DNA from: Blastocystis sp. Blastoise
Taxonomy: Eukaryota; Protista; Bigyra: Opalinata
Reading direction: 5' to 3'
Length of the DNA: 64,000 nt
Assembly: GCA_039096225.1 (NCBI GenBank)
Contig: JBBPEB010000015.1
Span: 1,426,001 to 1,490,000, forward strand
Shown here one piece after another: positions 13,833 through 62,712 of the stretch. The translations under genes were made by a program, and so were the position numbers. Each line of letters opens with the position of its first letter. Positions within the stretch are counted from its first letter, which is position 1. The notes under the pieces were generated by a model. The model ran no database searches. It saw only the letters and a list, made by a program, of their open reading frames with translations, and was not told where the DNA came from.

Positions 13833-14615
13833 ATGGGATTACAATCAATAATATTTATCATTTCATTAAGTTTGTTAATGAGAATAGTATCTGGATTTGG
13901 CCATAATTATGCTGTTCTTGTAGCTCCGTCAATGTTCTTTAAGAATTATCGTCATACAGCAAATATCTTGGAAATCTATCGATTTCTTAAACAACATGAT
14001 TTTCCAGACGAAAATGTATATGACCCTATATTACTAAAGTTTTACATGATAATTATTTGTTATAAAATCATTGATTAATAGATTATTTTGATGTTATCTG
14101 GTGAAATAGACGTAGATAATAGAAATCCAAATATGCCAAGTATTATAGGAGAAAATAATCCGAATGTTGATTTGTATATAAATATAAATAAATCTATCAA
14201 CTTATAAAAAGTTCTAAAACTAATAATTAATAAGGATTCTTCACATTATATGTTTTTATATAAAAAAATGTTTTCTATAATTCAAAGTAATAACTATAAT
14301 ATATTAATCTCAATATTTAGAATGAAAGATGTTCAAGTGGATTATTATGGTTCAGAAGTCACATTAGATACTTTTGAGAATGTCTTATTAAGTATTATTT
14401 ATTTCTTAATCCTTTTTAAAAATACTATAAAGATAAGATGAATTCTTCTATCTCTTTCTATCGTCAGCTTCATTCAGATGCTAATAGTAATATTCTTATA
14501 TATATTCTATTTATTAATTATTTTATATATATATTATGTACTAGATATATATGAATGGTCATGGAGGAGAAGGATTCTTTAAATTCAGAGTATGTCATCG
14601 TTTCATAATATACTG

Positions 14616-14672
<57 letters not shown>

Positions 14673-15202
14673 CTTCTATTATTTCACTTATTTCTTCTTC
14701 TTTATATCTATCATCTCTAGGAAACTGAAGATCTTACTACTAAACATCTCTCTATGATCTTAAACGAAATGTATATTCTTAAGAGGTATCTATATAGTAT
14801 TCTATTTTCTCTGGTTTTTCATAAATCTATTATAATACATATATTCATAGATATAAACATATCCTTCTTTTTCTGGATACATGCCAATCTTCATCACTTC
14901 AACAATATCCTTTCCCTCCAAATATCCTTTCTATTTCTTCTTCTACGTCTCCTGAATCCTCTTATAGTTATGGATATAACAGACAACTTGGAGTAACTCT
15001 CACGGATCAATTCACTTATTATTTACTTCAAGCTCTACAGAGCAAACAATATTCAACACTTACTATTCATCAACTTATCACTTATTATTTATCTCCAAAC
15101 ATACAAAGCACACCAAATGTAGTCAGTACTATTCAAAAACCATATACAATGATTAAATTATCTTCTTTTTTCTCATTTAAACTTAAAATTAAGTTTGTAT
15201 AA
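13833..15202 (+). CDS. GPI8: GPI-anchor transamidase catalytic subunit (peptidase C13), lacking a C-terminal TM
   Basis: Signal peptide; NYAVLV...NYRHTAN, DYYGSEVT, SNILIYMNGHGGEGFFKF (catalytic His), FLDTCQ (catalytic Cys), GVTLTDQFTY. Confidence 0.92.
14498..14544 (+). other. Non-canonical AT-AG intron (47 nt) in GPI8
   Basis: Needed to join NSNIL to IYMNGHGG. Sequence is CTT|ATATATATTC...GTACTAG|ATA TAT ATG. No GT donor restores the frame. Confidence 0.75.
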
Positions 15203-19287: not shown

Positions 19288-21737
19288 TTAGATTCCTTTT
19301 GAATCGACAATATTCTAAAGAATAGTGAATGTGAGAATAAATAAATAAAAAAGGAAAGATATACATAGTCACATCGTTGAGTGAGGTTTTCTACTCTGAA
19401 TTTATCACTATATATATATGTGTCTTTCAGACGTACACCAATATTATGGAATTGTTTGGGTATAGAATCATCAGGTGGGAACTAGAAGAATATATATATA
19501 TATATTATATATATATAATATATATATATGTTAAAGTGAATGTATATACATATAATTATAATAATATATAATAATTATAATAATATATAATCATATATAA
19601 ATATGTTAAAATGAATAAATATACATATAATGCAGGTTCTAAAGTGAAGCACACTCCAGGTTGTAGTATTTGTGTTCTTGAAACATGAGGTGTGTCACAA
19701 ACGTCAAGTCCAACGTATTTCCCAATGTAATAGGTTAAAAAACATATAATGATTTTAAAGAATAAAGAAAGCATGAGAATAATATAAAATAATAATATAA
19801 TAATAATAATAATAAGGATATAAAATGAGGAAAGAATGGTTTATATAATTGTTGTTGAATGGCTTGTTGTAGAGATGTTGATTTGATGATTTTCATATGA
19901 ATTAATAATTTAGTGATGAGTTCAATATATTGGTCCTGAAGGGATGCCAGAGAACTAGGAAGAAAATATAATAATAATAAGAATAATAATAATAATAATA
20001 AGAAGAAGAATAATAACTTGAACTAATTGAATTAAAAATGAATATATATATATATAACAAATGAATAATACCATTCTTCAAGTTGTATCGTTGATAATAA
20101 TTGTTTGTAACTTTCTTGGAGTGCATCATAAATGACTTTTTCTTCGTCATTCACATTAACAAATCGTTTCATTCTACAGAGAATTGTCGAGTAACTATTG
20201 AGTTCACAACCAAAATCTAGTAATAATGTGTCATTCTTTTGAATATGATGTTTTCCATTCTGATAAGTGTATGAACAACGATTATTTCCACCTATATATA
20301 TATATGATAATAGCCATAATATTATAGAATAATAAGAAAGAGAGAGACAGAGAAAGAGAGAGAAAAGAGAGAGAAAAGAGAGAGGAAGAGAAAAAGAAAG
20401 AGAGAAATATATACTAGCAATAAAGGGAGGATAAGCCATTCGAGTACCTCCTCGAGCTTTCACGCCAAACTCATAGATAGAGTTCAACATATATTCAGGA
20501 TTCCCTATTTCTATATATGTATATACTCATATTAATAATCATTATTATTTAAATAAAAGAAACAAAAATATATATTATTAAATCAAATAAATAAATAAAT
20601 AAATAAATACGAATTCTCTCCATAACATCAAGGAATGCTGCCACATTTACCATCCCTCCATGACGCAAATGTTTCTGTTCCGCGGGGGTTTTACGCCAAC
20701 GGAGGGATTCAATGGAGGGAATTAGAGATCTAGATAAATCATATATTAAAAAATTGAATTATTATTAATGTATAGAGTATATTTATATATAATTAATGTA
20801 GTATCAATAATACTAAGAATAATTATTATCATTATATATAATATATACTCAACTTTAAATGAATTTGAGCATGATTTGAGAATTGTTTGTATTTGATCGT
20901 CAAGCTGAGAGTCATCCGAAATAGATGTATATATATTCTCACTCTTTGATATGTATTCTGACATTTTCTAAATAGCGTATTATAATATAATATAATATAT
21001 TAAATAATAATATAATATAATATAATAAATAATAATAAATAATAATACAACATTAATAATAATAATAATAACATCACTATATACAGTGGGCATTTCTTTT
21101 AAGTCATAAACTTCAGAGATTTGGAAATTGGATTTAATATCATCAGATGTGAAAGATTGATTAGAAATGTTATCTGGAGAGCTTTAGAATAGAATATAAT
21201 AAAATAATAAAATAATAATAATAATAAAAAAATACTTTTGATTCTTAGACATAAAAAGAATAGAATCAACTTCAGAGAGTTTTTTTTCAGAGGATCTTGA
21301 TAATAGAAGAACCATATTAGGTTCTAAAATACCACAAAGATAATTAAAATTTGCATTTTGACGATACTCATAAGGAATATTCCAGCTCATATACTTGATT
21401 GAAGACGAAGTTACAATAATCGAACTTTTAGGAGGTAAATTAGACAATAAAAGTCTTTGACGATCTTTATATCTATGTTTCAATTGTTATGCATATGAAT
21501 AAGATAAATAAAAATACTCTTCAAGAGGTAAATCAGGAAAGAAACCTTCTCCATCAATCGAATTTTCCGTAGATATGAACTAAGAATCATGATGAAACGA
21601 TAAAATGAAACATAAACATACTCTAGGATATAATTGTGAAAGAAATTGTTTTTTCGGAAGTACTCTCCCTAATAATCCTATATATAAAGACTCAAATATA
21701 TGTTTGAAAAGATAATACTATTAAAAGACGATATCAT
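19288..21737 (-). CDS. Icp55/XPNPEP3-like M24B aminopeptidase P homologue with predicted mitochondrial presequence; metal ligands degenerate
   Basis: MISSFNRLLGRVLPKK presequence; YEYRQNANFNYLCGILEP, LRWRKTPAE, RMAYPPFIASG, LLDFGCE, PHFIGKYVGLDVCD, FTLEPALY, IGVRLKD. Confidence 0.85.
19727..19821 (-). other. U12-type AT-AC intron (95 nt)
   Basis: 5' ATATCCTT, branch TTTTTAAC, 3' AC. Splicing joins FFPHF|IGKYVGLDV, the conserved M24 motif. Confidence 0.92.
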
Positions 21738-24367: not shown

Positions 24368-25770
24368 TTAATCCATTCTGACATTCATATATGTAGGTAA
24401 ACGCATAGGAGCATCATTGATAACACTATAAAGATAATTAAAATATATTAAATATCAGATAAACATTAATAAATATAAAATAAATATAAAATAATAATAA
24501 TATACGAGTTAATGTAGTGATAAACATAGTTAGCCATAAGGATCATTTGAGTGATTTGAGCACAGACGACAGTTTGTCCTGCTAAATGACTAGAGAACCA
24601 GTTGGCGCCACGATTTAATTCTTTCCAAGAAGAAGACCAGAAGAGGAAATTAAGGAAACGAGAAGCAGCTTGAGCAAAAACGAAATGAGAAGTAAAAGGT
24701 TCAACTTCACCTGACTATAGAATATATATATATGTTATTATTTATAAATGAGAAATAAAAAGAAAGAAATAAAAAAACATATAAAATAAAAATATTAAAT
24801 AAGACACAATAAATACTCTATTCTTAGTGAACATAGTAAGTTGAGGAATAATAGCAACAGATTCTAATAATTGAGAAACAGACCAACAACTATCTAAGAA
24901 GTAGCTATGAGCTAAAGCAGGGTGGAATAAGAATCCAAGAATAAGACAAGGAACAATGAGAAGAAGAGCACCAAGTTTTTGAGATACATAATTATTACCG
25001 AAAGTATCTTGATGAGCATTATGAGTATATCTGAATTGAACCATAATACAGTAGATAACAACAAGAATAACTAAAAGAGTTAAACATTCAATTGTTTGAT
25101 ATAACCAATCACCAGAACGATCAAAAGGTAAATAACCTTCACTTCTAGTAATAGCAATAGTTCTAGTTAAAAAGACAACGGCATAACATTGAAGAGATTT
25201 TAATGAAAGACCTATAAATATAAAAATTAAAATTCATTCATTATCTACATATTTTTATATATATTTATGATTAAAGTGACGAATAAAAATAAAATAAAAT
25301 AAAAACAAAATAAAATAAAACAAAATAAAAACAAAATAAAATAAAAATAAAATAAAATAAAAATAAAATAAAAATAAAATAAAATAAAAAACAAAATAAA
25401 ATAAAATAAAAATAAAATAAAATAAAATAAAATAAAAATCAAATAAAATAAAAGCAAAATAAAATCTAATTAAGAGTCACATGAAAGTATATACCCATAA
25501 CAGATTGAGAAGTAATAACTTTGATTAAAATTAAAATGAAACCAAAACAACAAACCATAGAACCAAGAGTTAATAAGAAAGAGAAATCACCATCAGAGAA
25601 GAAATGGAAGGCAAACATGATAAAAACAATGAAACTCGTCCATAATAATACATTAGCTCTATTTTTCTTGACAAAACGCTTTAAGTTTCTAATAAAATAA
25701 AATAAAATAAACTTGAACAAAATGAAAATATATATAATCTTCCAGCATAATCACTAACTGAAGAAATCAT
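24368..25770 (-). CDS. ERD2-like (KDEL receptor family) protein with extra N-terminal TM; 5'UTR intron at ~25785-25831
   Basis: GLSLKSLQCY...TR, EGYLPFDRSGDWLYQ, LESVAIIPQL, VEPFTSHFVFAQAASR. Confidence 0.88.
25689..25735 (-). other. Candidate non-canonical AT-AG intron (47 nt) in the ERD2-like gene
   Basis: GGA AGA TT|ATATATATTTTC...TTATTAG|A AAC TTA AAG restores the frame. An alternative GTTAGT donor with the downstream AAG acceptor is also in frame. Confidence 0.5.
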
Positions 25771-61006: not shown

Positions 61007-62712
61007 ATGGAGATTGAAAAGAAGTATATAAATTGAGAATGATCATATAAATGAATTTTAAATAGTTTAAATGATGAAGTGAGCGCTAAAAATGAGAAAG
61101 ATGTTCAAGGTTTTCCTTGGGTTGAGAAATATAGACCTACTGAATTCGAAGAGATTGTATCTCATGATGATATCCTTTCTACAATTAATAAATTGATTGA
61201 AAATAAGAAATTACCACATCTTCTATTTCATGGTCCACCAGGAACAGGAAAAACAACAACTATTTTAGCTTGTGCTCGAAAGATGTATGGTTCAAACTAT
61301 AAATCAATGACTTTAGAATTAAATGCTTCAGATGATCGTGGTATTGATGTTGTTCGTGATCAAATAAAAAACTTCGCAGGAACTCAGAAACTCTTTAGGT
61401 ATATTGAATAGATAATTTTTTTTCTATAATAAATATAAATATTATTGATTATATTATATATAGTTCAGGTGTTAAATTGATTATATTAGATGAAGCTGAT
61501 AATATGACAAATGTAGCACAATTTGCACTTCGTAGAAGTATTTCTATTGTTATTTTTTTTTATTTATTTTTTTATTTATTTTTTTTTTATTTTATTTATT
61601 TATTTATTCTATTGATTTTTATTGACTTTTTTCATTATTAATCTTTATTATTATATATACTATTATATATATATATTAGTTATTGAGAAATATAGTCAGA
61701 ATACTCGTTTTTGTTTAATCTGTAATTATGTGAGTAATATTATTCCTGCACTTCAAAGTCGTTGTACATATCCTTCTCTATATATTATATATGAATTTTA
61801 TTCTGTTTATATATATATATTATTTTATTATTATGAATATATTTTATTGAATAATAATTGTCCTTTATTTATTGACTCGCTTCCGTTTCGCACCGTTAAA
61901 TGTCACAAAAATACGATCTCGTGTCGATACAATTATTAATCAAGAACAGTATGAAACTTATAATTCAATTGGCCCTATTTATTTTATTTTTCAATATTTA
62001 TAGTATATATACTATGTTCTATATAGTATAAATATTACAGAAGATGGTATCAACGCGTTATTAGAATTATGTGAAGGAGACATGAGAAAAGTCATCAATC
62101 TTCTTCAAGTATATATATTTATTATATTTATTATATTTATTATATTTATTATTCTATTTATTATTATTAAACTTATTATTATAACCATATATAGGCAACT
62201 CACATGGCTTTTCCTATAGTAAATCAAGAGAATGTATATTTATGTTCAGGTTCACCTTCTCCCGTGATTATTCAAAGTATTATGGATACTTTATTACAAT
62301 CCTCTTTCAATGAAGCAATGAAGAGTAATATTTATAGTTTTCTCAAAATCAACTTATTTATATTTATATATATTATTATTATTATTATTTTATATATAGA
62401 AATATCAGAAATCAAAGAATCACATCAATTTGCACTTCAAGATATAGTTCCATTAATTAGTAAAAAAGTTCAACAATTAGAATTACCTCCTCAAGTTCAA
62501 ATCTATTTATATAAACAACTAGCAGATCTAGAGTATATATATATATATATTGTTTTATATATAATTATTTATGAATATATACATTTTTATACTATTCTAT
62601 CTATTATACTAGATATCGTCTTGCTTCTTCATGCCAAGAGTCTATTCAATTAGGCTCTCTAATCAGTATATTTATCCTTTCAAAACCTATGTTAGAAAAT
62701 AATACACTATAA
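61007..62712 (+). CDS. RFC5: Replication factor C small subunit (human RFC5 / yeast Rfc3 type)
   Basis: PWVEKYRP, LPHLLFHGPPGTGKT, LELNASDDRGIDVVR, LDEADNMT..AQFALRR, ALQSRCTRFRFAPL, GDMRK, LADLEYRL. Confidence 0.93.
61768..61876 (+). other. U12-type AT-AC intron (109 nt)
   Basis: AC|ATATCCTT...TCCTTTATTTATTGAC|T CGC TTC restores the invariant SRCTRFRF. Confidence 0.95.

Follow-up and report, generated by a model that had tools for sequence, protein, structure and literature searches.

An intron with AT-AG ends and a major-type donor in the GPI8 gene of a Blastocystis genome assembly

The stretch of DNA analysed here, referred to as the window, is 64,000 nucleotides long (G000:C4:1426001-1490000) and belongs to the genome assembly of Blastocystis sp. 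"Blastoise", which has 33.3 Mb in 34 contigs with a GC content of about 23%; the strain is apparently Rus-B, from a Russian tortoise (PMC12129017). The window carries the GPI8/PIG-K gene (Table 1), all seven exons of which are open. The C13 domain (Pfam PF01650) was matched on exons 1 and 7, and the best PDB matches of the public 264-aa model were chains of the GPI-anchor transamidase (9ub7_C, E 6e-40, and 7w72_K, E 5e-37), whereas the matches to legumains were weaker (E 1e-20). Since the solved transamidase chains outscore the legumains, the gene is GPI8/PIG-K, as the earlier note on this DNA had proposed from the sequence. The catalytic Cys (DTCQ) and the catalytic His (GHGG) are both encoded in the DNA. 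A DNA search of the genome returned only the gene itself and TA-repeat noise, and the approximately 25 other C13 matches in the genome are legumains and not a second GPI8 copy. Because GPI8 is single-copy it is not a spare paralogue, a possibility that the earlier note had left standing. Six-frame Pfam searches of the genome gave no match to Gaa1 or to Gpi16 (PIG-T), which short exons or divergence can hide, and in the same kind of search GPI8 itself scored just about 1e-5 per exon. At 14100-14130 GPI8 has an Asp (IDVDN) where the solved chain has the Cys of DVACN, which may be the residue joining GPI8 to PIG-T in other species.

Table 1. Positions of the GPI8 gene parts and of other introns and genes referred to in the text (positions without a prefix are those of the window)
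Feature	Position	Strand	Description or evidence
GPI8/PIG-K gene, 7 exons	13833-15202	+	Pfam C13, spliced alignments, PDB matches
GPI8 exon 1	13833-14015	+	Pfam C13 match; spliced alignment
GPI8 intron 1	14016-14081	+	GTATATGA...AATAG, 66 nt
GPI8 exon 2	14082-14173	+	Spliced alignment
GPI8 intron 2	14174-14320	+	GTATATAA...TTTAG, 147 nt
GPI8 exon 3	14321-14391	+	Spliced alignment
GPI8 intron 3	14392-14432	+	GTATTATT...TAAAG, 41 nt
GPI8 exon 4	14433-14497	+	Ends ...HSDANSNIL; aligned to homologues and chain 9ub7_C
GPI8 intron 4	14498-14544	+	ATATATATTC...ATGTACTAG, AT-AG, 47 nt, phase 0
GPI8 exon 5	14545-14589	+	IYMNGHGGEGFFKFR; contains the codon of the catalytic His (His-Cys dyad of C13)
GPI8 intron 5	14590-14720	+	GTATGTCA...TCTAG, 131 nt
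GPI8 exon 6	14721-14785	+	Spliced alignment
GPI8 intron 6	14786-14850	+	GTATCTAT...CATAG, 65 nt
GPI8 exon 7	14851-15199; stop TAA 15200-15202	+	Pfam C13 match
GT-AG intron of the public model WA158_001258 (P0001)	14487-14566	+	80 nt
U12 AT-AC intron	61768-61876	+
U12 AT-AC intron	19727-19821	-
U6 gene	C21:551506-551617
GcvP (glycine-cleavage P-protein) intron 3, AT-AG	L122 1900-2125 = G000:C19:919499-919724	+
GcvP intron 7, frame-odd	L122 3361-3453 = G000:C19:920960-921052	+
HSP70 paralogue intron 7, GT-AT	L031 ~2317-2504 (G000:C7:292916-293103)	+	Conservation only
IleRS-like intron	L138 4743-4847 (G000:C23)	+	Conservation only

The five GPI8 introns other than intron 4 all begin with GTAT and end with AG. 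Exon 4 closes with AGT AAT ATT CTT (SNIL), its last 12 nt, at 14497, and exon 5 opens at 14545 with ATA TAT ATG AAT GGT CAT GGA GGA (IYMNGHGG); the 47 nt that lie between them read ATATATATTC...TGTACTAG, that is AT...AG with a final CTAG, and reading through them leads to an in-frame stop. In the alignments every residue of the conserved SNIL pairs with one in SNIF/SNIL of homologues and in SNIFIYMTGHGG of chain 9ub7_C. Spliced alignments were made with a protein-to-DNA aligner written without any splice-site preference, the sole setting of which is an adjustable penalty on non-canonical ends, and with all four GPI8 homologues used (P0010, P0012, P0017 and P0004) it picked 14498-14544. Alignments restricted to canonical ends were 8-20 score units worse and retained an in-frame TAG. 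When canonical ends were enforced the aligner picked an AT-AC intron at 14498-14541, which was rejected because it leaves this TAG in frame, and for the same reason the 3' end of intron 4 must be G. We also enumerated each in-frame GT/GC..AG pair near intron 4. The pair GC14480-AG14544 removes ANSNIL, as the earlier note had said of the GC option, GT14487 with AG14566, AG14569 or AG14572 loses the GHGG motif, and the pairs of GT14538 leave a stop. The nearby GT had been dismissed in that note as giving the wrong frame, which does not hold, as GT14487-AG14566 is in frame (80 nt) and had been overlooked, although GHGG is lost with it. Thus, 14498-14544 is the only junction that preserves both SNIL and GHGG, and the alignments and the enumeration agree with the original claim that the SNIL/IYMNGHGG motif is rebuilt only by removing these 47 nt (ATATATAT...CTAG). 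The catalytic His reaches the protein product only via this junction, and as a feature of the assembly the AT-AG observation is confirmed. Exon 5 opens with the same 8 nt (14545-14552) as intron 4 (14498-14505, ATATATAT), and because of this repeat at both ends the junction can slide by 0-8 nt with the mRNA unchanged; among the slid positions an AG end is found only at position 0.

Consensus sequences and position weight matrices were built from 97 homology-validated GT-AG introns of the same genome (loci L031, L122 and L137-L142, and the window). Their donors are GTATAT in 64 of the 97 and GTATATAT in 45 of the 97, and their acceptors are TAG in 81, AAG in 13, CAG in 2 and GAG in 1. The ends of these introns are TA microsatellite-like, with the donor consensus GTATATATAT and alternating T/A before the acceptor, and their median length is 113 nt. 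When +1 is left out, the donor of intron 4, which has TATATAT at +2 to +8, lies at the 36th percentile of the 97 validated donors, and its TAG acceptor (CTAG, 14541-14544) lies at the 12th percentile, both being comparable to those of the other GPI8 introns. This bears out the earlier description of the donor as the locally dominant GTATATAT form in which +1 is A. Intron 4 therefore resembles the U2 GT-AG introns of its own genome in length (47 nt within a range of 34-730), TAG acceptor, AT-rich 3' tract, phase 0 and donor positions +2 to +8, and it differs from them by the A at +1, where it loses pairing with U1. Measured against the features of a U2-type intron, it has the AG 3' end, the usual 3' tract and the extended donor match to the GTATATAT consensus, and it has AT at 14498-14499 in place of GT or GC. 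The 5' end of U1 snRNA, which the earlier note had suggested inspecting and of which two copies were found, is canonical (ATACTTACCT); a U6 gene was also located.

The earlier note had further stated that the donor is not U12-like, and this stands, because the U12 introns of the same window begin with ATATCCTT. The donor of intron 4 is ATATATAT and not /RTATCCTT, the CC at +5/+6 being absent, and no TCCTTRAY branch box lies about 8-20 nt from its 3' end; the last 30 nt are TTATTTTATATATATATTATGTACTAG, and the nearest TTAAT is about 25 nt upstream. The U12 reading of intron 4 is thus rejected on motifs. In the window's two textbook U12 AT-AC introns the donor is ATATCCTT and a branch box precedes the AC end by 8-10 nt; the signals of the minor spliceosome have not drifted along with the AT-rich genome. 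A (UA)n hairpin joining the splice sites, or a nonconventional intron of the euglenid type, was also rejected, as the minimum free energy of intron 4 is -2.2 kcal/mol and 181 of 200 shuffled sequences were at least as good.

The public model of this gene, WA158_001258 (P0001), joins other sites. It lacks the catalytic His because it uses GT14487-AG14566, by which SNILIYMNGHGG is replaced by R and the protein reads ...HSDAN-R-EGFFKFR, with an 11-residue gap opposite SNIFIYMTGHGG when it is aligned to the solved yeast-type GPI8 chain. This intron's donor, GTAATA, and its acceptor, GGAG, are each at the 2nd percentile of the validated sites. Since AT-AG junctions are normally beyond what BRAKER and StringTie can output, the public model looks like a frame-saving workaround, and the loss of the catalytic His from it probably results from pipelines of this kind. 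The public model also starts at Met16, by which a signal-peptide-like N-terminus is dropped.

Multi-exon genes of the same genome were surveyed against conserved references (the genome's own intronless HSP70 and alpha-proteobacterial GcvP, ValRS, IleRS, LeuRS and MetRS), and each non-canonical call was inspected by eye. Most of the non-canonical calls in tRNA-synthetase genes and in legumain paralogues turned out to be insertions in coding sequence, or canonical introns that the aligner had enclosed in a longer skip, and once artefacts were removed the survey comprised 9 genes with about 110 homology-validated introns. Three of the approximately 110 have no in-frame canonical solution, namely GPI8 intron 4 and introns 3 and 7 of GcvP. 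GcvP intron 3 reads TCCG/ATATATATATTATAG...ATATATAG/ATC and has a donor of the ATATATAT type (ATATATATAT). It holds under a non-canonical penalty of 30, and the sole canonical pair that could replace it, GT1879-AG2125, takes out 7 aligned residues. This second obligate ATATATAT...AG case is what the count of AT-AG junctions beyond GPI8, proposed in the earlier note, produced in these 9 genes. In GcvP intron 7 the GTATATAT...AAG pair encloses 93 nt and is one base out of frame, which leads to a stop; the frame requires 92 nt, as GT-AA or TA-AG, and this could be either a one-base assembly indel or a real odd end. No stop or frameshift was found in the 19.4 kb of exons of the 9 surveyed genes. 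If three random loss-of-function substitutions had struck these genes, the chance of all three falling on splice dinucleotides would be about 0.03, a rough figure from a small sample. The earlier note's companion candidate on the reverse strand, an AT-AG intron at 25689-25735 in an ERD2-like gene, proved not to be obligate. This intron is not needed because the ERD2-like frame can begin at a downstream in-frame Met, MFAFHFFSDGDFS, which we take to resemble the usual ERD2 N-terminus, and no conservation support was found for an upstream extension of the frame.

The G at +1 is among the most invariant nucleotides of eukaryotic genes, and in yeast and human an A in its place prevents exon ligation and leads to disease. 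In Oikopleura non-GT donors are apparently handled by the major spliceosome. PMC5029451 reports, citing Parker & Siliciano 1993, that the G1-to-A change of a yeast 5' splice site is rescued only when the last intron base becomes C, and that U2-type introns with A+1 normally end in AC, which fits the first-last nucleotide interaction of yeast. An AT-AG intron is therefore expected to be a poor substrate for the major spliceosome. The U2-type AT-AC introns (/ATAAGT...AC; PMC5029451) are like intron 4 in having A+1 with the major spliceosome but theirs end in C and intron 4 ends in G. AT-AG is known mainly as a rare U12 subtype of plants and animals (PMC1557818; Sheth et al. 2006) or, in human, as a site rescued by A-to-I editing (PMC4176328). 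Such U12 introns share with intron 4 the AT...AG termini, and its host lineage does possess a minor spliceosome along with numerous AT-AC introns, but intron 4 is without the /ATATCCTT donor and without a branch box near the 3' end. In Blastocystis ST1, 98.3% of the introns are GT-AG, 0.5% GC-AG and 0.16% GA-AG, in addition to 346 U12 AT-AC introns (PMC5608401), and 77% of the ST1 minor introns are AT-AC (PMC10639083). The GA-AG introns of ST1 and ST7 (Gentekaki et al. 2017, PMC5608401) are alike in that non-GT donors are apparently used by the major spliceosome of an intron-rich protist at a low-percent level; in those introns, however, it is +2 that varies while G+1 is intact, whereas here G+1 itself is changed. 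Recurring AT-AG introns with a major-type donor in conserved genes are absent from the cited splicing papers, the cited Blastocystis papers and the genome paper, and the last of these makes no mention of non-canonical introns (PMC12129017). Protein searches with the public GPI8 model and with exon 7, and a metagenome scan, returned no close relative; the sole orthologous GPI8 loci found, on two 41%-GC Blastocystis-like contigs (L027 and L030), have no intron at the site of intron 4 and are thus silent on GT versus AT.

The reading that we favour, tentatively and at slightly less than even chances, is that intron 4 undergoes productive AT-AG splicing by the major spliceosome. Base 14498 would then truly be A in the organism, and intron 4 would be an ordinary short U2-dependent intron of an AT-rich lineage with the donor /AUAUAUAU in place of /GUAUAUAU. 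It would be excised at AG 14543-14544, and the resulting mRNA would encode ...SNIL-IYMNGHGG... and hence an active transamidase subunit. From the sequence we infer the removal of intron 4 in vivo, the spliceosome responsible and the efficiency. What we count in favour of this reading is the sole motif-preserving junction, the intact exons, the single copy, the typical donor and acceptor, the canonical U1 and the GcvP case, which as an independent second instance strengthens a plausible interpretation; in addition, three odd intron ends against no exon damage in 19.4 kb do not look like random damage, and there is precedent in the genus in the GA-AG introns of ST1 and the hundreds of AT-AC introns (PMC5608401, PMC10639083). 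On the other side we count the yeast result given above, by which AT-AG should suit the major spliceosome poorly, the public annotation, which joins other sites, the lack of matches to Gaa1 and Gpi16, which bears on selection on GPI8, and the G-to-A change, which turns TGTATATAT into a perfect TA run as consensus smoothing or slippage would; the assembly itself is of R9.4.1 nanopore reads polished with MiSeq reads, from a diploid organism (PMC12129017).

These last points belong to a competing explanation, which we consider unlikely though it deserves weight, that the A at 14498 is not the functional base. It would be either an R9 consensus error in which a lone G in a TA run was smoothed, or one allele of a G/A pair of which the G allele works. 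The Rus-B genome was assembled with Flye --meta from R9.4.1 nanopore reads and then polished by racon (four rounds), by Polypolish with MiSeq reads (three rounds) and by POLCA, and its k-mer signal is diploid (PMC12129017), so that the assembled A could be one allele. In both AT-AG cases, moreover, the G-to-A change lies directly before TATATAT and makes a perfect repeat, and GcvP intron 7 is one base out of frame, as would follow from an indel in a G run. Against this, the TA run spans just 9 nt in a unique region, and three rounds of Polypolish and POLCA should have corrected an error there; most GTATATAT donors retain their G (45 of 97), and the undamaged exons over 19 kb argue both against a high error rate and against freely decaying alleles. 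It is improbable, in our judgement, that GPI8 is instead spliced as annotated (GT14487-AG14566), or unproductively, with a catalytically dead product or a decaying gene as the outcome. The P0001 junction itself speaks for it, as it comes from an annotation pipeline that favoured introns supported by RNA-seq, and so does the failure to detect Gaa1 and Gpi16, with the reservation made above about short exons. Such splicing would, however, have to use a donor and an acceptor that rank as low as given above, the GAG acceptor being found in a single validated intron of the 97, and to skip the strong CTAG acceptor. It would also remove 12 residues, SNIL and GHGG included, that are still encoded perfectly in frame, in a gene the remaining exons of which are all intact, and the model has the look of a workaround.

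Very improbable, to our mind, is that intron 4 is removed in some other manner, either by the U12 spliceosome as an AT-AG subtype or after A-to-I editing, by which the base would be read as G before splicing. In its favour, no non-canonical U12 subtype of human and mouse is commoner than AT-AG (PMC1557818), and A-to-I editing rescues certain AT-AG and GT-AA sites in human (PMC4176328). Blastocystis has a wealth of minor introns of the AT-AC type (PMC10639083), and two of them lie in the window. The true U12 introns of the window retain both of their signals, whereas intron 4 has neither the ATATCCTT donor nor a TCCTTRAY-like box 8-20 nt from its 3' end. Editing meets the difficulty that intron 4 contains no stable duplex to recruit the enzyme, its folding being no better than that of shuffled sequences, and ADAR-type enzymes are, to our knowledge, metazoan. 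The little probability that is left goes to other explanations.

If splicing of intron 4 by the major spliceosome is the correct reading, the intron is probably one of a recurrent /ATATAT...AG class in this genome. A wider proposition, which we regard as possible but hold with less confidence, is that Blastocystis of the tortoise clade maintains a standing major-type /AUAUAU...AG/ class of about 2% of introns, together with a few odd 3' ends, and that its major spliceosome does not need G+1. In this lineage the second catalytic step would then either do without the textbook contact of G+1 with G-1 or rely on a substitute for it, and a culturable protist would offer a natural system in which to study how the catalytic core accepts A+1. 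Since standard annotation pipelines cannot emit AT-AG junctions, other genes of this genome are likely to be mis-modelled too, and missed junctions of this type may be part of the reason for the genome's low reported BUSCO score (43%). RNA-seq data of the strain have been deposited under PRJNA1041441 (PMC12129017).

Some further observations were made on introns in the surveyed genome. The HSP70 paralogue at L031 shares about 60% identity with the cytosolic HSP70 copies, which are intronless, and has 12 introns of which 11 are GT-AG; across intron 7 the conserved ...LVDYYIYEFKRR is restored only as GT-AT with the end within a (TA)n run, and with GT-AG ends the 4 residues YIYE of the EFKR helix are lost. 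In the IleRS-like gene L138 the canonical G/GTATAT...TTAG/ intron is in frame and deletes G-I of VNGIVLASDG before the KMSKS loop, and the homology-optimal junction is TA-TA, AT-TT or TA-AT. The legumain-like paralogues L009, L010 and L013 (G000 contigs C13, C7 and C13) have in common an intron whose donor is GTATATAT but whose 3' end offers no usable AG; in L010 there is no AG in the last 88 nt of the intron, the ends being uncertain as the references are only about 30-35% identical. An intron at L139 (4933-5050) begins with a short copy of the start of its downstream exon, and GcvP intron 3 has a similar exon-start repeat near its 5' end. The intron load of the genome is very uneven. No introns are present in MCM, in six genes of the CPSase_L_D2 family (among them pyruvate-carboxylase-like and CPS-like ones), in five HSP70 genes or in most legumains, and MCM, the CPSase_L_D2 genes and cytosolic HSP70 were for that reason uninformative for the survey. 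By contrast, there are 6-24 introns per gene in GPI8, GcvP and the class-I tRNA synthetases.
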